From: Trichosphaerium sp. ATCC 40318
Lineage: Eukaryota > Protista > Tubulinea
Assembly: GCA_038496445.1 (NCBI GenBank)
Contig: JALMLS010000577.1
Location: 1,116,001 to 1,180,000 of the forward strand
Length of the DNA: 64,000 nt
Direction: 5' to 3'
In this document: in pieces, positions 1,336 to 51,288 of the stretch
How positions within the stretch are numbered: position 1 is the stretch's first letter
Layout: every line of letters starts with the position of its first letter
Position numbers and translations under genes: made by a program
The notes under the pieces: generated by a model
What the model was told of the DNA's origin: nothing
What the model saw: the letters and a program-made list of their open reading frames with translations, nothing else
The model's database searches: none

Positions 1336-3088
<1,753 letters not shown>

Positions 3089-12644: not shown

Positions 12645-12923
12645 ATACATTACTTGTTATAACATTAGCTGTATGTTCTTTTCATTACTATGACTTATTA
12701 TACAATGAACATATTGCGACAACAAATTGAGAAGTCGGTTCTAATCACTCATTTTCAAGATTGAAAAACAGACTTAAAGTCGTTCTAAGTTTGGCGTTAT
12801 CAGTAAACCTTGACAAAATTTCTTGGGAGAACTACGCTACAAGAAAATACTTAACATAATTTTAATAAACTATGAAATGAGAGGGCTCCTTATCGCTAAG
12901 GGGCATTGTTTATTAATGATGTT

Positions 12924-15505
12924 TTATGAACTAACTACGAAAACTCCAAGTGTCTCAGTTGTATGTCGTCTCTCACTATCTCTTAGAGTATCTTCCTCGA
13001 TAGCTGAACCAATATTGGTTGATGATCCAGAACCGTATACTATAGGCCACCTACACAAATCAAGTCAGCAAATACAGAAACAGGCAAATGCTCTCTAGTT
13101 TTTCGAAGAAATTACAAAAAGCAAGAACTCATACCCTCCGTTGTTGCCTCTCATGCCTAGCGATGAAGCTACTACTACTCTAGGAGAAGATACTGACACT
13201 GGTATGTTGTATGGAGGTGAATCTCCAAACCCACGGATTGATCTTGAGCTTGTTTTGGCATCAAAAGTATGTGTGGCAGATCCAATTTGTATACTTCCAC
13301 TTCCTGCTTCTACAATTATTACGCCAACACTTTCTGTAGCACGAGATAGTATTGGATCCTCTCCTATATGCTTTCCAATATATATCGATGATGGACTCGG
13401 TGGTTGCGAGTATGTTGAGCCCTTAAGAAGTGAATTAGTAAAAAGCTGTTCAAAACCTTGTTTGACGAAGGATGATACTTACACTTGCCCAGAACACACT
13501 CCATTTAGCGTCATTTTCACTCATCACTTGACCAAGAACAACTGGGTCGTTATAGCTCTGTGACGGTGTGAATAAGTCTCTACAATTATCATAGTTAGAT
13601 AAAGAATATCAATGAGTTTTAAAGGTGCCTTTGACTCCAATCGCGAAAACGTGCAGTTGTAGAAACAGGTACTACTGTTGCCTCCATCTTGATACCATGA
13701 ACTGCTTCAGTATATACACCTTCTTCAACAACGATACAAGTGACTTTAGTAGCACTAAATGCTTGGTTGTCTGGTGCTTGAAGCTTTATTTGGAGATATC
13801 CTTGGTTAGTTATTTGGACTCTAACAACTCGTGGAACACCTGAGATGTAGTGAGGAGTACATGCGACCACCTGGGAAGTAGTAAGTTTTGAGTTGAGACT
13901 TGTTCACGAGTAGCGTACCATATTTGTGTATGTGTTACTGACGGGAACTGTTGTCCACGTGTTTTGATACCAATCTGTTATTGTCTCCATCTTTAATGTC
14001 TGAGTTGGTGGAGGTGCAGTGGTTGGAGCTACTGTAGGTGGAGGCGGTGGAGTTGTAGGAGCAGGTGTTGGAACTAGTGTCGTTAGAAAGGTTGTTTTCT
14101 ACTTTTTCTGGTTTTTTCGTACTATCAGTTACTGAGCATTGATTAGGTGGGAAAACATTTAAAACGCAGTTATAGGTCAGAACTATCGGTTGCCCATAGT
14201 CCAGTACTTCAAAATCATCAGGCCTGATAGCCCTATTGAAAATCTTAGGTTTTGACTTTTGTTGTTTTCCAATAACAAAAACGAACGTACTGTAGAACAC
14301 GTGTCCCAAAACCCATTGAGTCCCATGTAACAGAACTACCAAGGTCACTAGCGGAAGTGATAGGGATATTACCACCATCAGAAAGGAACATTCCTTAATA
14401 AACAATCAAAACAATCCAGGATGTAGTTTTTGGTCTTACCATATTTTTTTAGAGCCTGTATTACAACGCGTTCGTATTGGTTATATGGGGTTTCGTCAAA
14501 TGAAGCTTTCAGTCTAAAACGAACGCCATATATAGGAGCGAATTGATTACTAGAACTAGGTCCACCAGCATGTGAGGCAGGCCTAACATAGAACCCAGCT
14601 CTCATTGTAGGGTTTCGCAGTATGAAACTAAATCGTTTATGTCAGTTTTCCGAAGCAGTTATCACGTGATATTGGACGTACCGTATTGCGTGATCAATAT
14701 TACCTGCGAATACTTCTTCGGGGTAGAAAAGTAATTGAGCTATTGGAAATCCAGCAGCGTCAGCGCTTGTACATTGATCGCCTCGTAGAGAAAGAGGATA
14801 CGTCTATTTTTAAAATTTCAAAAAAAACACAATAAACTAAAAGGGTTTCGAAATGGTACCTGACACAAGTCCCATACGACTGTACATGTCGAAGAAACAA
14901 CAGTTACACCACCGACATTCCTTACAGTGGTCCGGTAACTCTCGTAAAGCTTCTTTTCGTCAACATCGTACACAATTAAATGACAATCGCCATCTGAGCT
15001 AGAACCACTACAACTAGAGCAAAAGTAGTCGTTACAACCTTCTAGAGCACCTCCCACCGGAAGAGGAACTTCCACCAAGTTGTCGCATGGCTCGTCGTAA
15101 TAGTCTGATTTTTTTGTCCACGTGACTCGAGGTGTATTTGAATCAGCTGTTAAAACATGTATCGATCTATCAATTTGAAAGCGACCTGCACCCCAATTTT
15201 GTCCTTGAAGATAGTTTATTATATTGTTTGAATTTGGGTGTAGAGGAGCTTGAGATATGTCTTGGTAGAAAGGTAGATTAGGGTCATCGAAAAAACGAAT
15301 ACCGCTCGATAAGGATAAAAAGGAAGTTGCTACCAATATTGAAAGCAAAACACCTAAACAGATTATATTAATTTCTGATAATGTCAGTAAAATAATAAAA
15401 AACAAGGCCTAATTTTTTGTATTTTGTCTCGCTGTTATGACGTCTGAATGGGTGTATTTTATATTCTAATTAATGTATTTGGGTCTATTGCGTACTTTGG
15501 TGCAT
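12924..15505 (-). CDS. Secreted multi-domain protein: bacterial-type N-terminal domain, Pro/Thr linker, second bacterial-type domain; multi-exon
   Basis: Spliced start MHQSVLLSILVATSFLSLSSG (signal peptide). Motifs DGDCHLIVYD, LRGDQCTSADAAGFPI, IDHAIRF, GVRFRLKASFD and ALKKYGMFLSDGG, then a PTPAPTTPPPPT linker, then GQVMSENDAKWSVFW, GKHIGED and EEDTLRDSERRHTTE. Confidence 0.8.
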
Positions 15506-17482: not shown

Positions 17483-18883
17483 ATGACATCATTACTTCTC
17501 CTTGAGACGCTCCCTTTGGAGCTTCAAACAATGTTAATCGACATGGACGTTGAATGTTACATTAAATGGCCTTTGCTTTGTCGATACACCTCCGTATCAC
17601 GTTTCGACGATGCGTTTCGTAAATCCGGCGTGGTTGAGAGCTTTTATCCTTCTGGTAATATTGCGAAACGTTTTAACTTCAAAAACGGTCAGGAACATGG
17701 ACTTTGCATTAGATGGTACTCCAATGGTCAGATACTCTCACAAAGTTCTTACCATAACGGCAAACTCAATGGCGACAGCAAAACATGGACACCTAAAGGA
17801 AAAATCGAGTCTGAAGGGCTGTACGAACACGGAGTTATGATTGAGTCCTCAGAGTATAACAACGAAGGAAAGGTTGTGAAGAGTTCGAGAGTGGTAAAAT
17901 ATGAACTTACTAAGATGAAGAAACTCAATGGCGACAGTACATGGCTGCCTAAAGGAAAAATCAAGCCTGCGGCGCTGTACGAACACGTAGTTATGATTGA
18001 GTCCTTAGAGTATAGCAGCACAGGAAGGGTTTTTAGGACTTCGACAGTGGTAAAAGATAAACGTACTGGGATGAAGAAAGAAGAGTATGTCTCAGGAATG
18101 GATATAATAACAAAGATTTATTACAATGAAAAAGGAAAAGAAAAAAAAAGACAACGTTATTGTACCACGGATAAGGCATTACTTAGTGAACGTACACGTG
18201 CTGGTGATGATTTATGGAAAATAACTAATTACCATCTCCGAGGTGTCATGTACGAACAGTATTACGAAAATGGAAAGGGTAAGAAAGAAGGAAAGTACAA
18301 ATATTGGCATGCCTGTTCAAATATTGTGAAAATAAAATGTTCGTATGTCAATGGTAAACAAGTAGGTGAACACATTTATTGGAGTCCAAATGGGAAAATG
18401 GGTTCGCGGTATAACTGCTCAGCTTTGGGGATAAATGGTAAATATGAAAGATGGTATTTATCCGGTAAACGTGAGAGTAAAACTATGTTTGTGAACAATA
18501 TGATGTGCGGAGAACATAAAAAGTGGTTTGAACAAACAGGAAGATTACAAGAACACTTCTTCTATGTCAACAATGAGCTTTGTGGTAAATACCACACATG
18601 GCATCAAAATGGACAATTAAAAAGGAGTTGTGTATATACAGAAAGTGGTATAGAGGGAGAAGATATTGAGTATCATGAAAACGGTGTTATAAGCTCAAAA
18701 TGTTTTTGGGTTAATGGATTGCGAGTTGGAAGACATTTTGTTCAATATGAAGATGGTTCTTTAAAAGAAGAAGTGTATTACAATAAGAAGGGTAGAAAAC
18801 ATGGAGGATATAAAAGATGGAATAAGAATGGTGAACTACATACAAAGGAAAAGTACAAGGATGGAAAATTACAGAGAAAATAA
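17483..18883 (+). CDS. Intronless MORN-variant (YwqK-like) repeat protein with an F-box-like N-terminus
   Basis: 466 aa with many GxxxxWYxNGQ / YxNGKxxG repeats. N-terminus LETLPLELQTMLI. Internal ~159-bp duplication (17762 vs 17921). Confidence 0.85.
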   Translation: MTSLLLLETLPLELQTMLIDMDVECYIKWPLLCRYTSVSRFDDAFRKSGVVESFYPSGNIAKRFNFKNGQEHGLCIRWYSNGQILSQSSYHNGKLNGDSKTWTPKGKIESEGLYEHGVMIESSEYNNEGKVVKSSRVVKYELTKMKKLNGDSTWLPKGKIKPAALYEHVVMIESLEYSSTGRVFRTSTVVKDKRTGMKKEEYVSGMDIITKIYYNEKGKEKKRQRYCTTDKALLSERTRAGDDLWKITNYHLRGVMYEQYYENGKGKKEGKYKYWHACSNIVKIKCSYVNGKQVGEHIYWSPNGKMGSRYNCSALGINGKYERWYLSGKRESKTMFVNNMMCGEHKKWFEQTGRLQEHFFYVNNELCGKYHTWHQNGQLKRSCVYTESGIEGEDIEYHENGVISSKCFWVNGLRVGRHFVQYEDGSLKEEVYYNKKGRKHGGYKRWNKNGELHTKEKYKDGKLQRK

Positions 18884-19235: not shown

Positions 19236-22186
19236 TTATTCATCATAGTCCTCCTCTTCTTCAGGTGGTAGTAATGATTTCTCGTATTCATCCATTACTT
19301 TTTCCCATTTTGTAAACTGAACTTTTTTCCAATACATTGGTTTCTTCATACGTCCATCTCTGTAGAATCCAGAGTGTTTTACTTGTAGTACTGACTCTTT
19401 ATCTGGTGGGTTCTTATAATCATATGCTGAGCAACTAATTTGCATATGGATACCACTAGGCCTAAAAAACAGAATTAACAAAGAAATCACATGGCTAACA
19501 GTCGGACGTCAACTTTGGCTGATATGCCGTACATTTTGACCAATAAAAACCCTGTGTCTCCTTTACCAACCATAAGAACTTCGTGATCATATGAAGACTA
19601 AATAGGAGTAAACAACCGCTCAAGATAGAGGACATTTGAGTAAACAGTAAATGACAAACCAAAAAAGGTATACAATCGTACCATAACTCTTAGTAATGTA
19701 TCTGTTGATCCTCTTATGTAAGGAGCTTTTGAATCCCTCAATACAACTCCCTCACCTTATTTCTTAATGTAAGTATACTGAATTTTATTTGGGCCCACGT
19801 GTTGGTGAGGGAAAAAAAAACGGAAAAAAAGGTACCTCCTAATTCAGTGGCATTGTTCAATACTTTTTCCATGTGCTTTTCTCCTTTACATACTTCGTAT
19901 TCAACAAGTGAGACAAAATCATTCTTTTCTTTAAGTAAGACATTCCTTAGTATCTCATGTGACTCTTCTGCAGTCATAGTTGAAGACTACAAAAAAGTTA
20001 ATATCACCACAAACAAGAGTCCCTGTTGCACTACTTTTCGCACAATCGTCGAGCCACGTTTGCCCTCAAAATGAGCTAGTTTCTGCAAATATGTTGTACA
20101 AAAGGGCTCCAAACAACACGCGCTGGACGTGAGTTCTTAGAAATAACATGCCGCTGAATTTCACAAAAAGTAGTGCAAACCTTTGTGAACGTTTTTCATT
20201 TTGTGAAACGTACTTTTTCGGCAACAGGCTGCAAGTTAAATACACGGAATTTGACATCTAGTACATATTTTTTTAGAATAACAGTTTCGAAATATATATA
20301 TAATAGTACCTCTCCAGTCATTATAACGTTCGAATTTTGCAGCGGTAACACTTCTTTGCATACCACGTTCTACATACAAAACACCTTCAGGAACATACCC
20401 TACAAAAGCAATCAGAAAAACGACTAGTCATACGCTCTCCACAACATCAAAATAAGCGCTGAAAGTTTACCTTCAGGTAGTTTATCCATAGGAAGCTTAA
20501 GTAAATGTTTGTACAATCTGTATGGCATCTCAACCTACCGACAAGTTAAACAATATCCAATACGGTGCTAAGCAGAAAATAGTTCAAAAGAGCTTGTACC
20601 TCAATATCAGTTGATGTAGTTAACTGTTCTCCATCCCATACACAACGAACACCAACTAAGTCTTCAGCAAGCCAATATCCTGTTGGATCAAGATCTGGAG
20701 GCCATTGTTGTGCAAGTGTAAAGTTAGGATTAATAGGTTCGTCAGGATCAAGTCTAGTAATGACTTTCTCTATTATATATGGAGTTACTGGTTTCCCTTT
20801 TGGCGTTAATGGTCTTTGTTTAACCAAATCAGGTCTATAATGATTCAATGTGGCCTTTATCCTATCAATATCACCACGCCACCAGTAAGGTATCCATATG
20901 TAAGATATTCCTTTATCTTTAAGTAATCCTTTCTTTAACTTATCTCTATCTCTTCTTTTTTCTGGTTTGATTGCATGGAATTGATGGTGACCTATAAAAA
21001 CATAGTTAAACACGTGTCAACGACATTGCGGCATCGCAAAAATAATAAAAATAAAAAAACTGTTTTTGGAACTTTTTTTTGTTGTTGATATTCTTGGTGA
21101 GTTTGGTTACCTTGGAATTCTATCGCAAGTTTAAATTCGGGTATATAAATATCAGATGATATAGGTCTGTCGATATCAGGGTTTAAAATTTTGATTGGAT
21201 CCTCAGCGTATGCAAAATCTTCAAGGATTTCTGTATTTGGAAATATTCTCTGTAGCATCTTCACCAACAACCTATTTACAGCTTAGCTTGCTTGGTTTCT
21301 TATAACATTGCTGGTATCTCATCACTGGTATACATACCATTGTGTAGTAGTTTTTTGTTCTATAACACGTGGGTCCAAAAGTGCAGGCGAATTGCTGAAA
21401 TTAAAACGAAATCCACGATGACACTTTCTCAAACCTACATAAAAAACAATTTGTATTGGAATTGCAAGCTATTTTAAACGTCTCAGTGGCACATACCTTG
21501 CTTAAGAATATCACGGTAGTCCTGGTGGAGTGCTCCAAGGTTGAATAGATCAATTAGATGCCAAGCAGGGACGCGGTGCCATTCAACCGGTTCTTTAATG
21601 TCAAATTCTTCAATGATTGTTCTATGGATTGTTAGGACATTGAGTGGGAAATAGTGACGCTTATAATAATGGAAATGACTAGTATGCATATTAAACGGTT
21701 TTGAAAAGTTTTTTGTAAGTAACACTGCTGTTACGCACTTCAGGTATTTAATTACGTAGTCTCGCTCCTTCCAGTACGTTTGGTCCTCTTTTCGCTCTGA
21801 TACCCACTTCCAAGGTACCCAAGGTACGTCCGGGTACAATGTACGCATGGCGTTCCACAGTGTACCCTCATGGCGCCTGTTAAATAAAATCAACCAAAGA
21901 AAACAACGCTAATGATGTAGTTGTACTTGAGGAAGTACTCGCCGCCTTTTTCGATGATTTTGGAGTTTGTTACGTTGTACCAATCGTCTGGAACATTTTT
22001 TATTTCTAAATCCTTCTTTACTGTCTCTATAAACTCCACTTGGTTATCTACGCTCTCGAAATGCTTTTCTTTTGGATCTCGTATCCTCCTTGCGTTTCTC
22101 ACTAAAACCCTTACAGTATTACGCTTGATAGGCGCTTTACGAAGCGTAGTAAGGCTAGCAAAACGATTGCTGCATTTATAAAGCAT
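19236..22186 (-). CDS. DDWY-repeat + PD-(D/E)XK-like nuclease + degenerate ATP-dependent DNA ligase domain fusion; probable mitochondrial leader; multi-exon
   Basis: Repeats LEIKNVPDDWYNVTNSKIIEKGG / LYPDVPWVPWKW. Nuclease-like SDIYIPEFKLAIEFQG...RDKLKK...IPYWW. Ligase-like YWLAEDLVGVRCVWDG, CKGEKHM...GEGVVLRDSKAPY and NPPDKESV. Confidence 0.7.
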
Positions 22187-35256: not shown

Positions 35257-36068
35257 TTAAAGACAAAAACCGATCGCAAATCCTGGAGTACCAATGTTGT
35301 TCATTCCAAGAGGATCAATTCCAGACATATCTACTACACTATCACACCAGTTTGATCCAGTATTTGCACAACCTGTACTTTCGCAAAACACGGTCAAGCT
35401 TGTTGAAACTCCTTGAACTGTTTGTGGGAAACCGGCACCGCCTACTGTTTGTTCGAAAACAGGGTTGCCATCACAAGACAGAGTGAATACTACAGCTGTA
35501 TCTGGAGAGAAATTTGTAGGTGGACTGAATTCATAATCATAAGTAAGGCCCGGCAATGTATATTCAGGAAAGTTTTGGTTGTTTCCAAAGACTATTATAG
35601 GGGCTGGCCCGGTGCGCTTCAGTTCTATTCGTGGTAGAGTATAGTCTTGACCATCAACATTCAATATGCAACCCTCTAGGTTTACCACAACAGAATGAAA
35701 AGCTTTATAAGATAACTCAATGAACTGGCCGTCTTGTGGATTCATGCCATTAGGGTTCACCATGAATTCAGTAATAATCATTTGGTCTTTTACCGGTCTA
35801 TACATCATTAATGTTGGAGGGTCTGTCGTTGGTGGCTCGGTCACCATAGGAGGTTGTTGTTGGTGGAGCAGTAGATGGAGCTTCTGTCGTTGGCGCTTCG
35901 GACGTTGGAGGCTCTGTAGACGGAGCGCTTGGTTGAAATGCTCCACAATCTTCTATCTCGCACAAAACGTTGGTGGATTTGTCCGCAGAACAGCATCTGT
36001 CAATAGTTTTAGATGAAATGGGAGGGTATTCGTTTAATTTCTGGTATTGTTCTGCGTTAATAACAATA
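35257..36068 (-). pseudogene. 3' exon of the interrupted secreted gene: Cys-rich segment, PT linker, bacterial-type lamin-tail domain; 1-nt frameshift near 35855
   Basis: From 36068 it reads IVINAEQYQKL...PSTEPPTSEAPTT and needs a 1-nt shift to continue QPPMVTEPPTT...IITEFMVNP...GQFIEL...NWC...GTPG. Confidence 0.75.
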
Positions 36069-39000
36069 CTATTGTAGGGTATCTTCAGAGAAACCCATTT
36101 TGGAACTGATCTTTAATTTATCAGCCCAATTTGCACGTATGTAATGTCGGTCGCTGTCGCTGTTCATACTCCACTTCGCTATATCCATATATACGACTCT
36201 AGGTATGTCACCGTAAGCTGCAAGCGTCGCTCCCGTAATACGGCCTTGTCGACCGCCAGCTCTTCCTTTGTGTCCAGCATATTTAGCAACGCTTTTGAAA
36301 ACTGCTGATATGCCAGATGGACCCAATCTAGTGTTTTTGTTTTTTAATGTAGTGAAAAACGGCTTTGTATTCCACTTCTGAATAAAGTTGATGTAATCGC
36401 GTAATATCTTTACTGGACACATGTACTCGTCGCCAGTCGCATCAATGTTTACCACATGTGGTACTCCTCCTTGTGATGTTTTTGTACGCATAAAAGTGAC
36501 AACGATTTTGCCGTCACGATATACCACATGGTCTCTGTCCAATATTTCTGTCACTTTTGGTCTTTGCATGCATCTGATGTACAAGGCTATGATAGCACCG
36601 TCACGGAAATATTTGTGGTCGGGTACACGTTTGTACGCGTGTTTGCGCCAATGTAAGAGCCATGTCATATCAAATGTTGGCATCTTTTCTTTTCTAGGAC
36701 GCGCTTTTGCAATACCTTTTTTCACTAACGAAAGCAAGTGAGCATCGTCTTGTTCTGTCGGAGGTTTGTATCCTGCTGCATTATGGATCATCGTGATTGC
36801 TGCTGACGCTGTACGACCAATAGATGTAGCGCCTTGTCGATAACGATGTGTAATATACATCGCCACTGTTGCCGGTGTTGTAGGTAAGTATTGAAACTTA
36901 TGATCCTCACAATACTGTGTAAAGAGATACCACTCTCTACCATAAGAATTGTAAGTGTTGTATGCGCTGCTGTCAGCAATAAAAGCACCAATTTGTTTCA
37001 AGTTGATGTCGTCTGCGTTTTCGATTTGAAGTGAACTGCCAAGTACGTCCATCGACAGTTCTTGAACGGTTCTACGAAACCACTTGCCCCTGTCAGAAAA
37101 ACGTCCTGTCCTGAACCGAGCTCGATGAAGTCCGTCTGCATCTGTAGCACCAACGGCCACCAAGGTTGAGCCGCCCACACCGGTAGTACGACTGTTGCTG
37201 TCGCGTTTTGTTCGCGAATCAGTCTTAGCACGCTTCCTATAAGACGTGCTGGAGGACATGCGTAGTTTATCTCGTTCCTCCAACAGGTCTGAAAATTATC
37301 ATGGTATTATACCGTACTTTATGGTATAATCACCTTTTATGGTACAAGCTCAGTATAATCCATAATTATACCATATAATTATACCATAAAATATGGTATA
37401 ATACCATGTTTTTTGGACAAATGGTATAACAGCCATTATACCATGTTTATACCATATTTCAATTTATAGAATATAATTATACCATAAAACATGGTATTAT
37501 ACCATGGTATTATACCACATTTTACAGTACATTATACCATGCATTATACCATATAATTATACCATAAAACATGGTACTATACCATGGTATTATACTGCAT
37601 TTTAAAGTATATTATACCATGCATTATACCATATAATTATACCATAAAACACAGTATTATACCATGGTATTATACTGTATTTTAAAGTATAGTATACCGT
37701 GCATTATACCATATAATTATACCATAAAACACGGTATTATACCATGGTATTATACTGTATTTTACAGTATTGTATACCGTGCATTATACCATATAATTAT
37801 ACCATAAAATGTGGTATTATACCGTGGTATTATACTGTATAAGTATAAGTTAGTCAAAGCTCACTTGGTCTATACTTGATTTAATAGCCTTTGGCCCTAC
37901 GCAAACGCCATACCACACAATGCTTTGACAGTAGCCGTTATTGAACATAATTGGCATATAAATGTGTGAAAAACAGTTTTAAGAGAGAAATCTGGTAACG
38001 CGCCCCAATTGCGGGCGTTTTAGGGATAAATTGGCCAATTTTCTCCGATTGACAGTATTTGAGGAAGAAACCACTCCACGTACCCCATGTTAGAACGCTA
38101 CAGTGGTAGACACACCAAAAACGCGTTTAGCGCTTGAAAAATGCCCATTCGCAAAAAACCTCCAGTTGGAGGTTTTTTTCCCCGGCTCTCATTTTTTTCT
38201 CCCCTCCATAGGCATTTTTACACTCAATCAACGCCATACAGCCTCATTTACCAAATCAGGAGCAAAATTATTTATTTTTTTTTGACATTTTTGATATACG
38301 CTCCAATGCATGTTAAAACGCGTGAATAGTGCTATAAGGCCAAGTTGTTTCAGAGCCTACCCATTTTTTGAGTTTTTTGGTTTTTTTTGGATTTTTTTGG
38401 ATTTTTTTGAATTTTTCCCTACTAAACGCCCGCATTTGCCAGAACAGATAGCATTTAGGCTTCACACCCATGCGTTGACCTTACGAGTGATATTATAAAC
38501 CAATTGGCTAAGTCAGAGCACAAAACTAAGTCTTGTCCAGTTTATCGCCCGCACAACACAAGGTACGCTAAAAGTAGTTGTTTTGAAGCCGCTTGCCATA
38601 GGTTTTAACCAAGCTAAATAGATGATAAAAAAAAAACCAAGATGTGTTAGCTAACAGGTACGATTCCGCTAGAACTTGTTTCCGATGAAGTTGGCAGTTA
38701 TTTTCATTTCTTTGTTTTAGTCTTGGTTTGGCTCCACCACACAGGTCATTTGTTACTCCCAGTGCTGCCACCACAACAAAACAGCAATTTTTGTACGACT
38801 ATTTATTTTGTGCATCAAGCCTTCACTAATTCTTCTTCTAGTTTTCATGCTATGTCCATTCGAAGCACTTACAGCAAGTACAATATTTTTTTTGAAGGTT
38901 ATTTGATGTGTCAACTACCACAAAAGAGGATATGGACAAAACCAAAGGTCACGGATGTAAACAAAAAAATGTATTAATAAATGTGGTTTTATTATTAGAA

Positions 39001-41863
39001 CAGTTTTTACACGGTATAATACACTTGGTTTTGTGGTATAATCTACCAAGTTTTAAGGTATAATATACCAGACTTTGTGGTATTATACTGTGTTTTATAC
39101 CATGTTTTATGGTAGAATTATACCATATATTGCATTTTTTCAGATGAAAAAATATGGTATAAATTCGCACTTTCTACTGCATATTTATGGTATAATTTGG
39201 CTGTTTTATGGTATAAATCCTTTGATTTATGGTATATTATACTGGAATTTGTGGTATAAAATTGTAATCAATGGTATAATTATACCACAAATTCATGGTA
39301 TCTACCATAAAAACAGCTCGAGAATTTTAGACCTGATCCTGAGCCATTCCATTCACCGCTTCTGTGCCTGGTTGATACCAGCGTGTGTTGAAGCGATCCA
39401 GCTGTGTGTTGTATGCTGTTGCGAACCTGTCGACTGTGTGAGGTCCGAACGCTTGCTGTATTTGGTGAAAGAAAGACGGTCTGATCATCCAATCTTCGAC
39501 GTCTATCAATCGACTCGGCCAATCCGCAGAATTCTCCTCGGACGGTATCCACTGCGGTTTTAGCAGTGTTGCATTTTGTTGCAGAAGGAATAACCACGTA
39601 TCCTTCACTATCTTGTCTCGCGCCGGGTTGCGAGATCCTCTCCAAAGCCAAGACACTACGCTGGTGCTGTCGATCTTCATCTGCACTACTCTGTCTTGTA
39701 CAGGGCTGAAACTAAATAAGGCTTTTTTTGCAAAAGCCATTTTTTTGCCACCAAATACAGCCTTATTTTTCACCAAATTGCCTTGTTTTTGCCAAAAAAA
39801 ATGGGCAAATATGAGGCATTGCCTTGTAATTTTGGGCTTTGGAGCCTCATATTTGGGCCAAATAGCAAGCAACTGGTTCACTAATTAGCCTTAAAATAGC
39901 CTGCATTGTTGGTCCAATAATGCCTCATTTTTTGTGCAACAATAAGGCATTTTTGCCCTCAATTTTTGGGCATAACCCAGGCACCATATACTCATAAAAC
40001 AAGGGTTTATATAGGCATACAATAGTGATTCATTTATTAAAGTACAGTACACAAAACACAAAAAACTTCAATGTCCTCCATGTGAAAAAAAACCTTTAGT
40101 TAAAAAAAAAATTAACAAATTATTGGTATAATTTTCGCGGACTGGAAAAATGGTTTAAAGTACCTATACTCCTGTTGTAGGTGGATTTGGGTGCTGCGGT
40201 TCGAATGGCGGTGGTTTCGTTAGAATCCATAAAATACTAAGCGCGTGGTGACGGCGTCTATATAAAACGTCAGTAGTAAATGAAAAAAAAATGTTTAGGA
40301 AGTGTTGGTGTGGTGGAGACTTACCTTAAACCAATGTATCCTTAATGTACAATGTGTACACAACCAATGCCTAATTGGTGCCTATAAATTTAAGGCTGGC
40401 AATGCATAAAAAAACTAGGGCAGGCATTGCCTAAAAAAAACAAGGCATTGCAACAATTAAGGCATTGCCCAACAAAGCCTTATTTCAATGCCTGATTTTT
40501 GCCTTTTCTGCCATTGCCTTTGCAAAATCAGGCATTGCCATTTTTGCATACCTGATTTTTGCCATCAATGCCTGATTTTAAAAAAATGCCTTCATATTTA
40601 AGGCAAAGCCTTGTTTAGTTTCAGCCCTGTATTTGCGCTTTGTATGCTTTGAGGGCTAGATGGACTGCCCATAACTCTAATTCGTTGATGTGCAATCCTA
40701 GTTGAGGTTCGTGCCAATTTCCTCTGGCTTGTGGTAGACCTTTGATTGTTCCTGACCATGCTGCTTCGGATGCGTCTGTCTCGATGATAAATACGGTTTC
40801 TTTTCTCCACAATGTTTTGCCGTTCCATCTCAGAAGTGCTTCTCTCAACCACTCTATGTCTGCTTGTAGTTGAGGGTCTGGGCGTACCAATGAATTCCAG
40901 TTCATCCAAGGCAATGTTACCTGTCCTATCGTGCGGTAAAAGCTGCGACAGAACACTCTTGCTGGTGTGAAAGCTTCTTTGGTTGCAACCAACTTTCCGA
41001 CTATGCTTGACAGCTCTCGTATGTGCACCAAATTTCTTCTTCGAATTGACTTTGATAATTTTTTCAATCCTTCGCGTATGTTTTTGATCTTCTTTGCTGG
41101 TACGCGTAACTCGCCTTTGCTTGTGTCGATGATCATACCCAAGTGCTCTATAACTTGAGTTGCTTCCCAGTGTCCTTTGTCTGGTTGGTTTTGCCAACCC
41201 AGTTTGTCGAACAATGGCTTCAGAATTGTATCTCTGATGTGTATCAATTCGTTCTTTGTAGGGGCTCCGATAATCCAATCGTCGATCCAAATTAAAAATG
41301 TTATTCCCATCTTCCGTAAGTGCCTGACCATAGCACGGTTTATCTTTGTAAACAGCCACGGAGCAAAGCGTACTCCGAAAGGCATTCTTGTCCACCGGTA
41401 AATCTTTCCTTTCCACACGAAGCACAGCCAACGCTGACTTCTCTGATGCATCTTTATGTGATGAAAGCCGGATCGAAAGTCGCCTGAGGCCATCCACCAT
41501 CCTAGACCTATTTGTTTTATGAACACTCCCAGCCCTTCGAACTTTGTGTAAGCTGGAGTGATTCCATTGTTGAGACCTCTTGCATCGAATACCATTCGAA
41601 ACAGGTCTTTGGTTGTTCCCTTTGGAACAAAATGAACTGGACTTATATGAAACGGATTCTCTTCTAACTGAACGACACCGGTTTTGAGAAGCTTCTTTAT
41701 TTCTGAAGTTCCAAACTGTTCTTCCTTCACATTCTTGATCCAATTCCCTCGTCTGTGCTGCCAAACAAGCGGTCGATCTACCAAGAATTCGAACCCATTT
41801 TTGATACCTTGTACTATCCAGTTCTCGGCGCCTATATCTCTCCACCCCTCCCATTTTAACCAC
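36069..41863 (-). CDS. Tyrosine recombinase ORF (interrupted by two TIR elements); N-terminal part overlaps pol in another frame
   Basis: SAM-like TYNSYGREWYLFTQYC...VAMYI, box I CMQRP, RTKTSQ, CPVK, GRQGRITGAT and AKWS...HYIR. After excising both insertions the frame is 2811 nt (937 codons) and open. Confidence 0.9.
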
Positions 41864-42096
41864 GGCGCGTGGGAGGTTGGAGAAGGTTTTTCATTGACCA
41901 CGGCTGCGACCGCGACCACGGTATCCCCCTCGCTGAAAGGCGTTACCACTGGGAGCATGATATTGAGTGCCAGGTGGTGCTCCGTTGTTTCTACCACCAC
42001 TGTTGTTGTTAGTAGCGTTGTTGCTACCACCACCATTGTTGCTGTTGTTGTTGCGTCCGTTACCGCCACGGCCACCGTTACGACCGCGACCACCAC
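36998..42096 (-). CDS. pol: reverse transcriptase + RNase H + DIRS-type DNA methyltransferase-like domain (interrupted twice)
   Basis: RT: DFRSGFHHI, MPFGVRFAP, IWIDDW. RNase H: ETDAS, HINELEL, IDS, NSADWPSR. MT-like: VDRFAT, QDW...NYACPP, LPVWAAQPWW. The reconstituted frame is 2115 nt (705 codons). Confidence 0.92.
37284..39335. mobile_element. Non-autonomous TIR element (2052 bp) with inverted ATACCAT-rich subterminal arrays
   Basis: Ends are CAGGTCTGAAAATT ... AATTTTAGACCTG. TATACCAT motifs dominate the left end and ATGGTATA the right. Removal plus one A restores both overlapping frames. Confidence 0.88.
37471..37840. repeat. 80-bp tandem repeat, ~4.6 copies, inside the 2-kb TIR element
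   Basis: ATATAATTATACCATAAAA at 37471, 37551, 37631, 37711 and 37791. Confidence 0.95.
39701..40629. mobile_element. MITE/non-autonomous DNA transposon, 929 bp, 25-bp TIR, TA target duplication
   Basis: CAGGGCTGAAACTAAAYAAGGCTTT at both ends (1 mismatch), TA at 39699-700 and 40630-31, and AGGCA/TGCC-rich subtermini. Excision restores AQIQDRVVQ in RNase H. Confidence 0.93.
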
Positions 42097-43213
42097 CGTT
42101 ACGATTGCGGTTACGCCTGCTGTATCGACTCTTAATGTTCATAAACTTAATCTTCTTTCGAAGATCACTTTCTTCTTTTGCTTTGATAGCATTGGCCTTG
42201 TCCATGAGTGTTTGATGAGCAGGAGGCATGCTATACAAAGACTTATCCTCCAATACTTGTTTAGTGACATCAACACCAACCTCCTCGATCATAATAATCT
42301 CGGTCATCATCGCCAATATTGGTTTTATGGATGGATCAGAGGCGGGCTTGTTCTCACGCTGTGCAATTCTGCACAAATTCTCGTACTGTTTATACGCAAG
42401 TCGACGCGCTTTCGATTCAACGCCTGTACCCCATGATATGCTGTTTGACGGTTCAAAATATACCAGCTGATGTATATTTGTAGGTAAAGTACCAACTGGC
42501 AAAGAAGGTACATACACTCGATTTGAATTGGGCATAGGGACGTTCGTAGGTACTGAAGGAGGCGCTTGCGTGCGTGTGTTTTGACGTGCCGAAGTATCAC
42601 GCTCATTATTTATCCACCGGTCTTCATGCTCGATATCTCTCATGTCGCGTACGTCTTGATCCTCTTCGAGTGCTCTCGCTAGATTATCCTCTAAAATAGA
42701 ATTCAAATCGCTACACAGAGAAGCACGAAATTCTTTAAATTTGCTGTCGATAATAGAAGAGAGCTGCGTTGGAATAATTTGCGTGCCGTTTAGGGCCTCA
42801 TTTATTACGTGAGGCTCGTTTTTACGTGATTTATCGTCCGTAGACGCCTGAGACGCTTGTCTCAGTGTTAAGGCTTCCTTTACTCCGACAAATATTCTTC
42901 CTTCTTCTATTTTAATCGCTGTGCTTAGGGCAATCTCTAGCTGTTCTTTAATCGGTCGTGTGTCGGGAGATTTGTCGTAACACAAAGTAAAATTATGTGT
43001 TGAGTCGGTGTCGACTAGCAGTCGATATAGGTGATAAGCATTGCCTTCTATGCCATCTCCGGGTAAATATTGCATCCCCATGTCGTGATAAATTTGCTTC
43101 AACCACATCTCGTTAGCCACGCCTAAGCGTAAGGCTGGCATCTTTTTTATAAGGTTTTGCCAATAAATTTCCTTTTTTACCGCTGAACTAACTACGTAAC
43201 TACCTTCAGACAT
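41891..43213 (-). CDS. gag-like ORF of the YR retroelement
   Basis: 440-aa intronless ORF upstream of and overlapping pol, with an RGG/Asn-rich basic tail. No CCHC knuckle seen. Confidence 0.75.
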   Translation of the reverse strand: MSEGSYVVSSAVKKEIYWQNLIKKMPALRLGVANEMWLKQIYHDMGMQYLPGDGIEGNAYHLYRLLVDTDSTHNFTLCYDKSPDTRPIKEQLEIALSTAIKIEEGRIFVGVKEALTLRQASQASTDDKSRKNEPHVINEALNGTQIIPTQLSSIIDSKFKEFRASLCSDLNSILEDNLARALEEDQDVRDMRDIEHEDRWINNERDTSARQNTRTQAPPSVPTNVPMPNSNRVYVPSLPVGTLPTNIHQLVYFEPSNSISWGTGVESKARRLAYKQYENLCRIAQRENKPASDPSIKPILAMMTEIIMIEEVGVDVTKQVLEDKSLYSMPPAHQTLMDKANAIKAKEESDLRKKIKFMNIKSRYSRRNRNRNGGGRGRNGGRGGNGRNNNSNNGGGSNNATNNNSGGRNNGAPPGTQYHAPSGNAFQRGGYRGRGRSRGQ

Positions 43214-43304
43214 CTCACCAGTCTTAAAAATAGCTATCGTAGGATTGCGGAAACGTTGTTACGTTCAAGGAACAAAAGGGCTTAAGAATATCGTATTGTT
43301 AAGC

Positions 43305-43436
43305 ACTTTGAACAATACCTACAATAAGTTAAGTACCATTACTTACACACATAATAACACTAATAGCAGAAAACTAAAAATAGAAATAAAAACCAGTTGT
43401 TTATTTAAGTGAGAATACAATCACGCATTTGTACTT
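43305..43436. repeat. 132-bp direct repeat R, inner copy
   Basis: Identical to 45565-45696. Contains the endonuclease C-terminal codons, the stop, AATAAA (minus strand) and one TAAG-N8-CTTA site. Confidence 0.97.
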
Positions 43437-44207
43437 TAATACCAGCAATAATACAAGAATGTCCACGGCATTGGCCATTTCTCTTACACCATCTTCTTGA
43501 ACTGTTAACTTTACCAGGCTCCAAGACAATGTGATCTGGGTTAGTACAAAAGGTACAATGACACAAGTGTGATGCATCTACTAAAGTACGGGCCAAACCC
43601 GGATACCATAAGTAGTTGCCATCAAGCCCTTTGTCAAACAAAGTAATGCCCTTCTCCACATATAGAACTGTATGGGCTAGATTGAAAAGTCTGCTCATTT
43701 TTCTGGTTCTAAATACAGCACGGAGGTACCCTGCACTAGTGGTTGACCCTCTGGTGCACAATTTGCACCCGGTATCTAGAATATACAATAAGTTTCTGAG
43801 TGATTACTTTGGTTGCTTTGTTAAGGTATACGCTTAAGCACACACACAATAACCCTAATAACAAAAAAAAACAAATTTAAGGTACCTTCAATATCAATTG
43901 ACTTTACTCGCATGGACTTTAACTTTGCTTGGGCAATGTCCCAAGGTAAAGTGCGAATATCTGTGGCAATGTGCCTTACATGAGCATCATTCCATTCTCT
44001 CTTAGGTACACACATTGCAACATAGTCATTAGTGTTCATTTTTCCAAGCGGTGTATTCCATGTTCTAGGCATACGCTTGTGTGGACACAGTGGTGGGTGA
44101 AATGGTTCAACAATGTGAAAGAAAGGAGTTCTTTTAGCAAAGTACAAGGGGCTGTACAGTTTCTCTGGGCCGGTTATGGTGTAGTAATTAGGCAAGTGTT
44201 CACACAT
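43405..44207 (-). CDS. His-Cys box / His-Me finger endonuclease (I-PpoI-like zinc-binding loop), 2 exons, 230 aa
   Basis: Exons 44207-43886 and 43775-43405 joined by a 110-nt GT-AG intron give 693 nt in frame. Motif ASHLCHCTFCTNPDHIVLEPGKVNSSRRWC...CRGH...C. Confidence 0.85.
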
Positions 44208-44329
44208 TCTTGAGGAGGCGTTGTTGTTGTTGTGTTGGATGTAGAATTATGATATAAAAGTAGTCGAGTAAATCGATCTTGTATCACTCAGATTTTTTCA
44301 ATCAACATTTATCTGTTTTCAATCACTGT

Positions 44330-45560
44330 AAAGTGTGTATAAGGATGTGTACTTAAAACGTAATAGCCCGTATCAAACTATACTCAGGATTGATTATGCA
44401 TTGTTGGTTAAGGTAATCAACTTAAAATAAAATAGCCCGTATCAAAGTACAACTTTTCAATCACCTTTTGAATGTGATTAAGGATGTGTACTTAAAACGT
44501 AATGACTCTAATGGTGGCAAATACAACATTGGTTGTTGGCGAGGGTTTTAAACAATCTAATTTGTAGTTGTAAACGCTTTTGGAATCAATCTGGTAACTG
44601 TGTTAAGTAGGTGAACTTAGATCGTAATAGCAACAATCAATCTAGTGTAACTGTTTTAAGGATGGATACTTAAACAACAATGGCAACAATCAATCTAGAT
44701 AAAGTACATTAAGGATGTGTGCTTAAACTATAATAGCAACAATCAATCTAGATAAAGTGTATTAAGGATGTGTGCTTAATGCATAATGGCAACAATCAAT
44801 CTAGTGTAAGTATTAAGCATGTGTGCTTAAACTATAATAGCAACAATCAATCTAGATAAAGTACATTAAGGATGTGTACTTAAAACGTAATGACTCTAAT
44901 GGTGGCAAATACAACATTGGTTGTTGGCGAGGGTTTTAAACAATCTAATTTGTAGTTGTAAACGCTTTTGGAATCAATCTGGTAACTGTGTTAAGTAGGT
45001 GAACTTAGATCGTAATAGCAACAATCAATCTAGTGTAACTGTTTTAAGGATGGATACTTAAACAACAATGGCAACAATCAATCTAGTGAATTGTATTAAG
45101 CAAGGAAACTTAGTGTACAATGGCAACAATCAATCTAAATAAAGTGCATTAAGGATGTGTGCTTAATGCATAATGGCAACAATCAATCTAGATAAAGTAC
45201 ATTAAGGATGTGTGCTTAAACTATAATAGCAACAATCAATCTTAGAGTAATGGCTATTCGCCAATGATACTAAGTAATACAACTTAATACAAGATAGCAA
45301 CAATCTGGATAAAGTACATTAAAGATGTGTGCTTAAACTATAATAGCAACAATCAATCTAGATAAAGTGCATTAAGGATGTGTGCTTAAACTACGAACTT
45401 TGATCGTAATAGTACCAATCAATCTAGTCTTAATGTGTTAAGGTTGAATATGGATTTATACTTCAACTTGTAAAGGATTGGACCTTGAGCTGTTTATAGT
45501 TGTAGTTTTATCAATCCATAATCAGTATTAATCTCAATATGGTTAAGCATGTGTACTTAA
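44330..45560. repeat. ~53-bp-period array of AATRGCAACAATCAATCTAG plus TAAG-N8-CTTA dyads, with an internal 222-bp exact duplication
   Basis: Dyads at 44340, 44409, 44479, 44604, 44657, 44710, 44763, 44814, 44867, 44992, 45045, 45097, 45150, 45203, 45271, (45320, 1 mismatch), 45373 and 45544. 44477-44698 = 44865-45086. Confidence 0.95.
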
Positions 45561-45564
45561 AATG

Positions 45565-45696
45565 ACTTTGAACAATACCTACAATAAGTTAAGTACCATT
45601 ACTTACACACATAATAACACTAATAGCAGAAAACTAAAAATAGAAATAAAAACCAGTTGTTTATTTAAGTGAGAATACAATCACGCATTTGTACTT
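45565..45696. repeat. 132-bp direct repeat R, terminal copy (2 bp from the junction core)
   Basis: Identical to 43305-43436. Confidence 0.97.
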
Positions 45697-45700
45697 CGTA

Positions 45701-47169
45701 CTACGTAGAACAATGTAACATTAGTTTAAAATCTCGTACACGTCATTGCCACCACCTCCATTAATCGTTGGTGGACGAATAGAAGACTGAGTGCTCCCTT
45801 TGGCTGTTATGCGGTCATTTCCATTTCCACCATTGATATTACCACTTCTGGACTCAAAGTCGCAGATATCAATATTATCAACACCACTACCACCATTTAT
45901 GGTGTTAAATATAACATCGTTCATAGCAATATGATCAGCACCACTATTTCCTTTAAAAATTGTCAAAAAACAAGGTTTTTAAAAAGCACGTGACTACGAA
46001 AATAATGAAAAATGGCACGCAAAGCAGATGTAGTGTAAAGATATTTGAGGTTTTTTTTGGGTGAGTTTTTCTTTTACGTTACCTGTAGCTTCGTCAAATT
46101 CTGTTTTGGTTGCTTTTATACAATCAGCTCCAGCGCCACCAATTATTAAATCAATCATAGAACTCATTTGTCTTTTATCTGAACCTACAAGCAAGATAGT
46201 CAGACGAGACAAATAATCACATGGTTTTCTTCGTTTTTTTTTCAAAGACTTTTTTTGTAAAATCCTGTACCTTCACGCTTTCCAGGTTCTGGTCCAAGAA
46301 TGTCAATACAATCAGCTCCGTTTCCAGAGTTTATGTTTCTCCTAAAATAAAAATCAAAATCTTTGAGCGAGGAACATAGAAAACATGGTAATTTTTTTGC
46401 TGAGTTTCGTTTTCGAGAGAAAAAAAAATAGAACAAAACCACTAATCTCGTACGCTTCACAAGAGGTCAATTTTATCCAATCAGCGCCACCATTAGTGAT
46501 GATATCTTTGTAAAAAGTGAGTTGAAGAAATAAAATTGTACCAAAGAAAGTAAATATTAGCTTACCTCTTACAACACTGTTTTTTAGATATACACAATCA
46601 CCACCTGTACCTGTCCAATTTTTTAGCAAGTTACGTAACTTGTACAAAAAAACACTACTGGAGCTCGGTTGACTTACCTGTTTCAATGTCACGAACTTCA
46701 GCACCGTCACCAATAATATATCCACTCCTTCATTAGTGTTAATATCACGTGTTATTTCGCTTCCGGGGTCTAGAAAGACGCAATCGACACCATCCGTTCC
46801 TACTATGACGCGTATACTTGTGTCTGTAGTGACAATAACACAATCCTGATTTCGTATTCCTACAAAGAAAATCTCATTAGGAACAAACATTAGGTGAAAA
46901 AATTGAAAAAAATAAACAAAAGGCATACTATTTCCTTGGCTATTTTGGCTTGTGGCGGTGAAGCAAGTTCCTGCCGCCCTTCGCCACATACAATAACTAA
47001 GATCGCACGGAACGCAATCATCACACGCCTGTGCGTAGCACGAAGCTACTATTGTTACAATGGTAAGTGTTTGAAGGTTAATAGTACAAAACAAACGAAA
47101 GGGGTGGTTAAATACATTACCTAGTAACACAACTAGCGAGACAAAGATGGAAGCACTAAAACCACTCAT
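45701..47169 (-). pseudogene. 5' part of the interrupted secreted gene with RTX/hemolysin-type GGxGxD Ca-binding repeats, multi-exon
   Basis: Signal peptide MSGFSASIFVSLVVLL. Repeats GTDGVDCV, TGGDCV, GGADWI, GNGADCI, GGAGADCI, GGSGVDNI, GGNGNDRI and GGGGND. Last intron is 45739-45701. Confidence 0.8.
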
Positions 47170-48899: not shown

Positions 48900-51288
48900 G
48901 AATTTTTATGGCAAAAGCGATTACAAATGCAGTTGGCTATTCGTACGTCACCGAAATGTCATTGTGTTACATAATCAAGGTTGTAGCTCTAAATTCATTT
49001 CACATACCCTAAACAGTACAGCAAAAAAACTAAACGTCAAACACCTTGATGATTGGTACAATGTCCGTACAGAGGACTGCCTGAAGCATGGTGGCTCTGG
49101 GATGCTACGGTAAGAAGAAGCTAACCTAAAACTCTACCTGACATCATCAGGCTCTTCCACAATGGCTCTCTTTGTTTCTGTTTACAGGTAGTGTATCCAA
49201 AGTATGATTGGATTCCATGGAACTTCAAGCACGTGGACTTACATTTGGACTGTTAAATGCAAAGAATAATTGTATTATTAGAGCAGTGCCAACAAAGTTT
49301 TGGGACAGTGTACCTAACCAACGACTCATGTTTGAAAGAATAGCAAAGGACCTTAAAGTTAAAGTACTTGATGATTGGTATGATATAAAACGTCAGAAAC
49401 TCATACAAAATGGAGCTGGAAGCATTCTAAGGTATGCAAAATGCCTAAAGGTGAATCTTGTGCTAACTTTTTTTTGTTTTTACAAGAAACCAATATTGTG
49501 GTGATTCTATTTCAGTTTGCCTATCAGCTTTGTATCCAAATCATCACTGGTACCCATGGAAGTTTAAGTTAGTGATGTCTTGGTTAGCATGTCACGTGCT
49601 AAAGAACTTTTGTTTGTAGACAAGATGGAGCAAGTTATTGGGATAGTGTTGCACACCAAAGAGAACAGTTTGAACGTATTGCAGAGGATCTAGAAATAAA
49701 AGATTTAGAAGCGTGGCATAGTGTTGGTAAAGATCAAATCAAAGCTGATGGTGCTACACTCATTTTGTACGAACTGTGTACATAATTTTCCCCGTGGTTG
49801 TTTTTTTTACTTTGGTTGATTGCTTATTCACTTCATAGAAATGAGCGATATAACGGAGATATTTCTAACTGTCTATCAAAGCTATATCCTCATTACAACT
49901 GGAACCCTTGGAAGTTTGAGTATGTTAATTTTTTTAGACTATTTTCATTGGCTTATTAGGCTTGTTTTTGTTTATCGGAGTTAGGATTGTCCCACAAAAA
50001 AATCGTAGGGAATTGCTTCAAAGTAATAGAGAAAGAAATTTACAAGAACGTATGGGTAGAGCTTTAGCTGTAAAAGACTTGGATAGATGGTTGTTCAAGT
50101 ATTGGAACGATATTGTCGGATTGCGTGATATGTTTGAGCGTGTAGGAAAGATTCTTGGTGTAAAACAGCTTGACGATTGGTATAGAGTTACTAGACAAGA
50201 TGTAATAGTTCATGGAGGAGCTTCTTTTATGTCGTACGACTAGTAATATTGTTGTGAATCCCTTTCTAATGTTTCTGTTCTTGAAGGAAGCGTGGCTGTT
50301 CACTTTCTTCTTGTTTATTTCAGATGTACCCAACATACAATTGGAAACCTTGGCTGTTTGCTACTAAAGATGGACAACACTATTGGGAAAGTGAAGATAA
50401 TAGACGGACGTTTTTACATACCGTAAAGCGTGAGTTTGCTGTTGACAGCAATCGTGCTTGGTATGTAGTTTTCTTACAAAAACGTACTGACTCTACTAGG
50501 TATCGTGTATCCCATAGCGAACTCCAATCTCTTGGCGGCCACGGTATGCTAAAGTATTGGCCTCAAGCACTTAATTTGATTGATCCCCACTGCGGTTGGG
50601 ATTGGAACAAGTTCTCTTTGTTAAATGGTAAAATGTCAAAACAGAAGTACGGACACTTTTATTGTACTATTCTGAACAGAGGCTATTTTTAGACGACTTA
50701 AGCAGCACGTGCAAACAATTTTTAAAGATTGTGCAGTTCTTGAAGAACATTTTATTGCATTACGTGCATCTAACCAAGAGATATTATCGGTGGATGTTTA
50801 TGTGCCAAAGTACAGTTTAGCATTCGAATACCAAGGTATAAATTTGTCTTTCTTTCATAAACAAATATCTCTGTAACTTCCATTAGGTGAACATCATTAT
50901 GGAGATGGTATATTCTATGCTGAGCAAATATCTGTCGCACAACAACTTCGTGATCAAGAGAAGCTTCAACAATGCACTGACATAGGTTACTACATACAAA
51001 AATTTAGGTTATTTTCATTTCTTTTGTTTGTTGCTTATTTTTTTTAAAGGTACTACTCTGGTCACTATACCGTATTGGTGGAAAGGAGATTTGCGTTCAG
51101 TGGTAGCAACAATACAAAAATATGCACCAGACGTGCCTTTGCATCATTCTCTGAGAGAGATGGCTCGGTTTACGTCACCACTATCAGCAACACGGCCAAG
51201 TGCGCCAAACACTCTGATGGCAAGCTTGATGTATCCTAGAAATAACAAAAACGCTGTGAATGTTGTAAATCAAACGAGAGCTTTCTAA
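48900..51288 (+). CDS. DDWY-repeat + PD-(D/E)XK-like nuclease protein (paralog of 19236-22186, no ligase domain); start uncertain
   Basis: Repeated LxVKxLDDWY...GG...YPxYxWxPWxF...FW units, then VDVYVPKYSLAFEYQGEHHY...RDQEKLQQC...TIPYWWKG. Confidence 0.75.

Follow-up and report, generated by a model that had tools for sequence, protein, structure and literature searches.

A His-Cys box endonuclease gene with a probable intron, beside a putative tyrosine-recombinase retroelement in Trichosphaerium sp. and possibly cargo of one composite element

Nucleases of the His-Cys box type occur beside a DDE transposase in the KolobokP transposons, for which cleavage-induced unequal crossover and multimerisation have been proposed (PMC9587614). 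Among the retroelements, Penelope-like elements keep their introns and encode a GIY-YIG nuclease of homing type (PMC8557442), and all described retroelements with a tyrosine recombinase (YR) possess terminal plus internal repeats (PMC4157794, PMC3266345). Here we describe a gene for a His-Cys box endonuclease, probably interrupted by an intron, which lies upstream of a retroelement with reverse transcriptase (RT) and YR-like genes on contig JALMLS010000577.1 of the tubulinean protist Trichosphaerium sp. ATCC 40318. The analysis set was one 64-kb window of this contig (positions 1,116,001 to 1,180,000 of the forward strand), and both nuclease and retroelement are known from one locus, in one copy. 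To our knowledge, transposon-borne His-Cys box nucleases have so far been known only from the KolobokP DNA-transposon lineage, and retroelements with homing-type nucleases only from Penelope-like elements, where the nuclease is of the GIY-YIG type. A His-Cys box nuclease borne by a transposable element (TE) and a YR retroelement are each of a known kind; their pairing has not been described before, and it is seen here in a single damaged copy. Full-text searches for such a nuclease in a YR retroelement or in the DIRS order yielded the KolobokP paper and reviews and no report of the combination, and the DIRS overview mentions neither introns nor endonucleases.

The proposed gene comprises the following features (coordinates are positions in the window; a slash within a sequence marks a splice or exchange point):

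44208..44340, minus strand: region upstream of the gene, ~130 nt, with a TATA-like TTTTATAT at 44259..44252
44207..43886, minus strand: proposed exon 1, ATG at 44207-44205, 107 codons plus 1 nt, an orphan N-terminal extension
43885..43776, minus strand: proposed intron, 110 nt, phase 1, aag/GTACCT ... TTCTAG/at, GC 0.30
43775..43405, minus strand: exon 2, the complete His-Cys box / His-Me finger domain, stop codon TAA at 43407-43405
43572..43453, minus strand: nuclease core SHLCH..GHSC, within exon 2

Judged from its sequence and modelled fold, this gene encodes an I-PpoI-type His-Cys box / His-Me finger endonuclease that looks catalytically competent; the TATA-like TTTTATAT may serve as its promoter. 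The two exons were searched and folded separately. Exon 2 alone matched the Pfam family PF05551 (zf-His_Me_endon) with an E-value of 5.8e-11 and 43.1 bits, the curated cut-off being 27 bits, and its only PDB sequence matches at E ≤ 0.01 were chains of I-PpoI (best E 4.2e-5), of which residues H98, C100, C105, H110, E114, N119, R122, and C125 were matched. Counted within exon 2, the motif places GCKLC at residues 2-6, SHLCH at 68-72, and NPDH at 78-81, followed by E85, N90, R93, C96, C102, H105, and C107. H69 is equivalent to the catalytic histidine of I-PpoI (H98) and N90 to its metal-binding asparagine (N119), while H81, E85, and R93 correspond to H110, E114, and R122. The domain begins at the first residues of exon 2, where GCKLC..GY.R supplies the equivalent of the first zinc ligand, and all eight Cys/His positions expected as zinc ligands are present (C3 or C6, C71, C76, H81, C96, C102, H105, and C107). 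Eight residues (S68, H69, C71, C76, H81, E85, N90, and R93) are invariant in an alignment of 31 sequences, namely exon 2 and 30 database matches. An AlphaFold2 (AF2) model of exon 2 built on this alignment reached a predicted local distance difference test score (pLDDT) of 92.8; compared with the PDB by Foldseek, its ranks 1-4 were again I-PpoI chains (prob 1.00, E 2e-3 to 8e-3, TM ~0.37), with I-HmuI, NFI, Smad MH1, and an HNH nickase among the lower matches. The intact motif and the His-Me fold that a first-pass annotation had proposed from the letters alone are thereby upheld by family search and structure comparison alike. That annotation had also pointed to the classical home of such enzymes in group I introns; since no Rfam family reached its gathering score anywhere in the 64 kb, residence in a group I intron or in rDNA was rejected.

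Relatives of the domain are numerous and distant. Among 1.84 billion representative proteins, 257 matched below 1e-3, none exceeding 40-44% identity over the domain. The closest (P0001-P0011, 32-44% identity) have in common with exon 2 a loop of ~20 extra residues before SHLCH, which the KolobokP-type matches (P0013, P0016, P0018, P0019, and others) lack; in P0012, PF05551 is fused to C2H2 fingers. The KolobokP-type relatives include P0016, from the oyster Saccostrea, and P0018, which lies in a locus (L005; ENA ERZ25073846 ctg42028, 1-13364) consisting of three tandem 4105-nt units with a KolobokP-like multimer architecture. Each unit carries a 149-aa open reading frame (ORF), a 184-aa His-Cys box nuclease, and, on the opposite strand, a 669-aa PF20700 transposase. 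A tblastn search of the window with this transposase gave nothing below E 0.6, and Pfam found no transposase domain in the neighbouring ORFs. The two closest homologues, in L001 and L002 (JGI 3300035016), are each followed by ORFs which are related between the two loci (33-38% and 29% identity; regions 674-4097 of L001 and 2739-5783 of L002). These loci probably represent another, uncharacterised transposon type with the same nuclease. Single-protein metagenome scans with exon 2 and with the RT found nothing.

The exon 2 frame holds no ATG 5' of the first zinc ligand in the ORF reading of the window, so that the start of an intact protein has to come from an exon further upstream. The exon 1 frame is a ready candidate and more than a chance reading, because its 141 stop-free codons, counted from the ATG, lie on the same strand directly upstream of the ATG-less domain; an open run of at least 128 codons has a probability of ~1.3e-4 by chance at the local composition. 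Exon 2 contributes 2 bases to the split codon, 122 more codons, and the TAA, for a total of 230 codons, and in coordinates, phase, and lengths the joining of two ORFs across a 110-nt GT-AG gap fits as first proposed. GC content is 0.42-0.43 in either exon and 0.30 in the gap. The gap, GTACCT...CTTAT-N12-TTCTAG, moreover shares the donor and acceptor style of three RasGEF host introns in the window (donors GTACGT, GTACGA, and GTGAGT; acceptors TTCTAG and TTTAG; at least 66 nt), and the earlier reading of a GT-AG intron is in keeping with this. On these sequence features we consider the gap probably a spliceosomal-type intron. Derivation of the gap from the 53-nt unit or the repeat R described below was dropped, the only match being 21 nt at 90% with E 0.08. 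The intron begins GTACC (43881-43885) and exon 2 ATACC (43771-43775), a 4/5 match that may reflect an origin of the intron by a small duplication or insertion, or chance. The AF2 model of exon 1, built from the single sequence, is uninformative (pLDDT 43.7). Several nuclease homologues start a few residues before the first zinc ligand, which indicates that an N-terminal extension is not a family feature.

The gene lies within a repeat-bounded cassette:

Cassette as a whole, minus strand: 2.26 kb, upstream of gag, in the order R1, 53-nt array, ~130 nt, nuclease gene, R2
45565..45696, minus strand: R1, terminal 132-nt direct repeat, 100% identical to R2
44340..45564, minus strand: tandem array of ~17-20 units of 53 nt, with a 388-nt higher-order repeat
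43305..43436, minus strand: R2, internal 132-nt repeat, containing the last 10 nuclease codons with the stop, and AATAAA

The 132-nt repeat is the only flanking direct repeat, and has no terminal inverted repeats (TIRs). The array contains two 222-nt blocks which are 100% identical, and each 53-nt unit combines GATTGATTGTTGC with a TTAAG-N8-CTTAA inverted repeat. The GATTGATTGTTGC of the unit resembles the ATTGTT arm of the junction sites listed next, and R opens with ~30 nt that resemble a diverged 53-nt unit.

Five junctions involve the cassette or the retroelement that follows it:

45691..45716, minus strand: J1, flank into R1, ACATTGTT-ctacgtagtacg-AAGTAC (N12 spacer)
45553..45578, minus strand: J2, R1 into array, GTATTGTT-caaagtcatttt-AAGTAC (N12 spacer)
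J3, minus strand: nuclease ORF end into R2, GTATTATT-gctggtatta-AAGTAC
43293..43318, minus strand: J4, or site A, R2 into leader, palindrome GTATTGTT-caaagtgctt-AACAATAC, 80 nt before the gag ATG
36044..36069, minus strand: J5, or site B, palindrome GTATTGTT-attaacgcag-AACAATAC, its left arm overlapping the YR stop codon

An ATTGTT arm thus recurs at fixed spacing at both ends of R1, at the R2/leader junction, and at the YR stop. In the 64 kb, ATTGTT-N12-AAGTAC has two occurrences, one at each R1 end (0.29 expected), and ATTGTT-N10-AACAAT likewise two, at J4 and J5 (0.36 expected); of 12 matches to GTATTGTT in the window, five fall at cassette or retroelement junctions. The interval from leader to YR stop is delimited exactly by sites A and B, each a perfect 8-10-8 palindrome. 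In the spacer of site A, R2 extends for 6 nt, such that the identity of R1 and R2 stops where a tyrosine recombinase would exchange strands. We infer that the junctions are putative recombination-type sites common to the nuclease cassette and the gag-pol-YR module. Such shared ATTGTT-type sites are our main evidence that cassette and recombinase module would belong to one mobile system.

The retroelement itself lies downstream of the nuclease gene on the same strand, in the order gag, a pol with RT, RNase H motifs, and a methyltransferase (MT)-like domain, and an overlapping YR-like ORF, an arrangement that matches the DIRS order (PMC3266345, PMC4157794):

41891..43213, minus strand: gag-like ORF, 440 aa, RGG-rich tail, no zinc finger
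40621..42096, minus strand: ORF with RT and the start of RNase H; RVT_1 E 2.7e-14, 53.8 bits (cut-off 29.6 bits)
39701..40629: insertion resembling a miniature inverted-repeat transposable element (MITE), 929 nt, within RT-RNaseH, 22-nt TIRs (CAGGGCTGAAACTAAAYAAGGC, 21/22), TA duplication
39336..39700, minus strand: end of RNase H and start of the MT-like domain; Dam E 0.04-0.06, below cut-off, a motif reading
~37283..39335: ~2-kb TIR element within the MT-like domain, CAGGTCT..AGACCTG ends, subterminal TATACCAT repeats
36069..37283, minus strand: YR-like ORF, 404 aa, overlapping the pol end

The gag-like ORF had no Pfam match and is assigned by its position. RT_RNaseH_2 was found on pol at E 0.011, below cut-off, and pol ends in the DIRS-typical ..VVLPVWAAQPWW.., which the YR ORF overlaps. 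Sole statistical support for the YR-like ORF comes from the phrog_216 integrase (E 8.4e-4, residues 181-398), neither Pfam nor the PDB giving a match; the YR boxes, read by eye, run R..TKT..GRITGAT..HY, with the histidine of HxxR apparently replaced. RVT_1, phrog_216, and the gene order together support the earlier naming of the neighbour as a tyrosine-recombinase retroelement. Introns were rejected as an account of the two gaps in pol, since both are DNA-transposon insertions with TIRs across which the pol reading frame continues. The ~2-kb TIR element is like a non-autonomous DNA transposon; its TATACCAT repeats are dense and inverted, and it contains a tandem repeat of 80 nt (37464-37863). 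With two such insertions in pol, this copy of the retroelement is no longer autonomous. Neither the gag nor a host ORF has a database record, and the RT locus at 27% identity (L007) showed no YR or MT similarity.

Repeats of the retroelement's own were sought with little result. The interval from gag to YR has no long terminal or internal repeats, and only 80 nt precede gag, so the R pair is the only candidate for YR-type repeats. No inverted repeats of at least 40 nt link the element ends, and no target-site duplication of the element is evident. A blastn-short search with the tail returned only 10-nt matches elsewhere in the element, and complementarity of the kind seen in the inverted terminal repeats (ITRs) and internal complementary regions (ICRs) of DIRS elements was dismissed.

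On either side, cassette and retroelement are flanked by host-like ORFs:

45721..47169, minus strand: upstream, several exons, with GGxGxD (RTX-like) repeats
35257..35946, minus strand: downstream, LTD-like

A phase-0 donor GAC/GTGTAC at 45741 and a phase-0 acceptor (35953; exon start 35952) could join these ORFs. On that reading, what was once a small host intron is now occupied by cassette plus retroelement; it would measure ~142 nt without the 9.65-kb insert.

The reading we favour, to which we give an even chance, makes the intron-spliced nuclease gene cargo of one composite YR element whose copying would be promoted by DNA breaks. The composite would run R1, 53-nt array, nuclease gene, R2, gag-pol-YR (~45702..36056), with a length of ~6.7 kb before the two later transposon insertions, and a split direct repeat would be represented by R1 as its terminal copy and R2 as its internal one. 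It would have entered the short host intron by a recombinase-type exchange between a circle junction (GTATTGTT attaac/agtacg AAGTAC) and a host pseudo-palindrome (ACATTGTT ctacgt/gcag AACAATAC), and this modelled exchange reproduces J1 and J5 exactly. Domain identity, gene anatomy, repeats, and junction motifs are observed, whereas splicing, membership of a single element, and every functional step are inferred.

Several observations weigh against this composite element. Firstly, the two perfect palindromes enclose an interval that does not include the nuclease gene; no described arrangement places the internal repeat upstream of gag (PMC4157794), and the composite gives site A no role in integration. 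Taken alone, the palindromes suggest that a gag-pol-YR circle was inserted in a pre-existing site. The early claim that the nuclease sits inside a retroelement is thus tentative: repeats and junction motifs link the gene to the element in this one copy, but its place is upstream of gag and beyond the palindrome-bounded interval. Secondly, the junction motifs are short, and for the B pair of a split direct repeat nothing was found beyond an 8-nt arm (GTATTATT against GTATTGTT). Thirdly, comparison with other genomes lends no help. No second copy of the element was found in the window and no close relative of the whole locus was retrieved; RT relatives above 29% identity were absent from 5.8 billion clusters (best 27-29%); the nuclease has no close relative either (best ~40-44% identity), and no RT or YR lies beside those nuclease homologues that have readable context (L001-L006). 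Finally, the gene model has weak points of its own. The intron is a splice prediction; a script listing frame-keeping GT-AG pairs with their lengths and splice-site hexamers found additional pairs that also keep the frame; no relative of exon 1 emerged from Pfam, PHROG, or database searches; and the last zinc ligands of the domain are spaced H-x-C instead of H-x3-C.

The strongest competitor, possible though in our estimation doubtful, divides the insert into two modules. A gag-pol-YR circle with perfect 8-bp inverted ends (GTATTGTT attaac/gctt AACAATAC) would have entered, by its recombinase, a perfect palindrome (GTATTGTT caaagt/gcag AACAATAC) at the 3' end of a cassette (R, array, nuclease gene, R) that was distinct from the retroelement and non-autonomous. 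This cassette would earlier have reached the host intron through the same kind of site, with retroelement enzymes acting in trans. Such a history accounts well for the exactness with which sites A and B, perfect in their 8-10-8 form, bracket leader to YR stop, and for the loss of R identity after 6 nt of the site A spacer, the crossover point expected of a recombinase; both predicted partner sites would have perfect arms, and nuclease homologues elsewhere ride on other transposon types rather than on RT or YR elements. It would, however, leave the gag-pol-YR interval without room for a promoter and without the typical terminal and internal repeats, require two successive insertions in one ~140-nt host intron, and join sites whose spacers have no mutual homology, and the duplication of R on integration of a cassette with one R is left unexplained. 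Whether as one composite element or as two modules, the nuclease would be in YR-mobilised DNA.

A decaying relic with a false intron is unlikely. Here exon 2 would stem from another transposon, either KolobokP-like or of the L001/L002 type, severed from its start, and have no function now; an indel or insertion would account for the 110-nt gap, and exon 1 would be an ORF that is unrelated or open by chance. The weaknesses of exon 1 speak for such a history, as it has no homologue, domain, or confident fold, several homologues begin just before the first zinc ligand, and many GT-AG pairs are frame-compatible. So do the derivation of the last 10 nuclease codons from repeat R and the two insertions that have already hit the adjacent element copy. 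A relic would nevertheless hardly be expected to keep exon 2 stop-free with every conserved catalytic and zinc position intact, nor a 141-codon open frame with ATG upstream on the same strand (P ~1e-4), and the contrast in GC between exons and gap, together with host-like splice signals, favours a real intron. The window bears no trace of a Kolobok transposase, and the 100% identity of R1 and R2, along with the open gag, RT, and YR ORFs, suggests that the insertion is young.

We regard as very improbable a domesticated host gene with a normal intron, beside which the DIRS-like element landed by chance: the host-style intron, the use of His-Me/MH1-like folds in host DNA binding (NFI and Smad MH1 being among the lower Foldseek matches), and fusions of PF05551 to C2H2 fingers such as P0012 would fit it, but the gene, the array, and both copies of R lie between host-like exons that would otherwise be ~142 nt apart, a putative intron which the insert would fill, so that a resident host nuclease gene is very unlikely, and the 3' end of the nuclease falls within a repeat duplicated at the outer edge of the insert, with junctions that carry the same ATTGTT arms as the recombinase module.

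What a nuclease might contribute to the composite element deserves comment. Integration by a tyrosine recombinase needs no separate nuclease, and integration itself would here be the task of the recombinase. Enzymes of the I-PpoI type are homodimers that cut long, partly palindromic sites. By analogy, the nuclease may introduce a sequence-specific double-strand break and so increase copying of the element by recombination, whether by homing into empty sites or by amplification of repeats, arrays, and multimers as proposed for KolobokP. Candidate substrates would be the 8-10-8 palindromes, sites of the J1/J2 type, and, within the 53-nt unit, its TTAAG-N8-CTTAA core. Circle processing and a part as toxin or regulator, which the first-pass annotation had named beside homing, are likewise hypothetical. 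The fullest version of this proposal is a homing retroelement, in which the YR inserts cDNA circles at ATTGTT-type sites, the nuclease cuts empty or repeat sites to provoke copying by host recombination, and the intron is kept because an unspliced RNA or a DNA circle is transmitted. As a complete scheme this is tentative, and we think it rather improbable. The argument from the intron had been raised in the first-pass annotation, and its logic is sound: a sense intron retained within a transcribed unit implies that unspliced RNA, comparable to retroviral genomic RNA, or a DNA form propagates. It presupposes, though, that the gene lies within the retrotransposed unit.

Should the composite element prove correct, it would be the second case, independent of the first, in which a retroelement recruited a homing endonuclease, here in an order that needs no nuclease for integration, and the purpose of the extra nuclease would become a directly testable question. 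It would also be a second retroelement group keeping a spliceosomal intron, with a bearing on the RNA or DNA form that is propagated in YR retroelements. The explicit junction sites offer concrete substrates and predicted circle junctions.

Further repeats were noted elsewhere in the window. A 66-nt tandem repeat encoding NAGTNAWGGNAQGFGNNQAAQN units lies inside an ORF at 490-903 (minus strand), and a MORN-repeat gene contains an internal duplication of 141-156 nt at 17783-18079. ORFs with a ..L(D/N)DWY..(R/K)..GG..L.. motif at 21483-21893, 49208-49504, and 49962-50243 may belong to a small dispersed gene family or repeat.

Set against known systems, the locus resembles each in part. From the His-Cys box enzymes of group I introns, with I-PpoI as their representative, the nuclease differs in residing in neither a group I intron nor rDNA, in a core identity of ~25%, in a putative spliceosomal-type intron, and in the shorter spacing of its last zinc ligands; the catalytic His and Asn, the eight Cys/His zinc positions, the ββα-Me fold, and the status of selfish-element cargo are common to both. 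With the DIRS order the retroelement shares the succession of gag, a pol with RT and putative RNase H and MT-like domains, and an overlapping YR-like ORF, as well as the lack of an evident target-site duplication. Terminal and internal repeats, and short motifs recurring at the termini and internally, are further points of likeness. Unlike DIRS elements it has no ITRs or ICRs and no clear B repeat pair, an extra gene is enclosed by its internal repeat, which is placed upstream of gag, and its RT reaches 27-29% identity at best. Penelope-like elements belong to another RT clade, have no tyrosine recombinase, and carry a nuclease that is fused to the RT and acts as the integration enzyme, but they too are retroelements that combine intron retention with a nuclease module of homing-endonuclease ancestry.

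KolobokP offers the closest parallel. The partner here is an RT and YR retroelement rather than a DDE transposase, and the flanking repeats are 132 nt long and without TIRs, whereas KolobokP has long terminal direct repeats (LTDRs) of 450/660 nt with TIRs of their own. The nuclease gene here shares its strand with the other genes, is interrupted by an intron-like gap, has an N-terminal extension of 107 residues, and falls in the subgroup with the ~20-residue loop before SHLCH. In both cases, a small His-Cys box nuclease appears as an accessory gene of a eukaryotic TE that has its own integration enzyme, in company with direct repeats, tandem or multimeric structures, and a proposed role for break-induced recombination.

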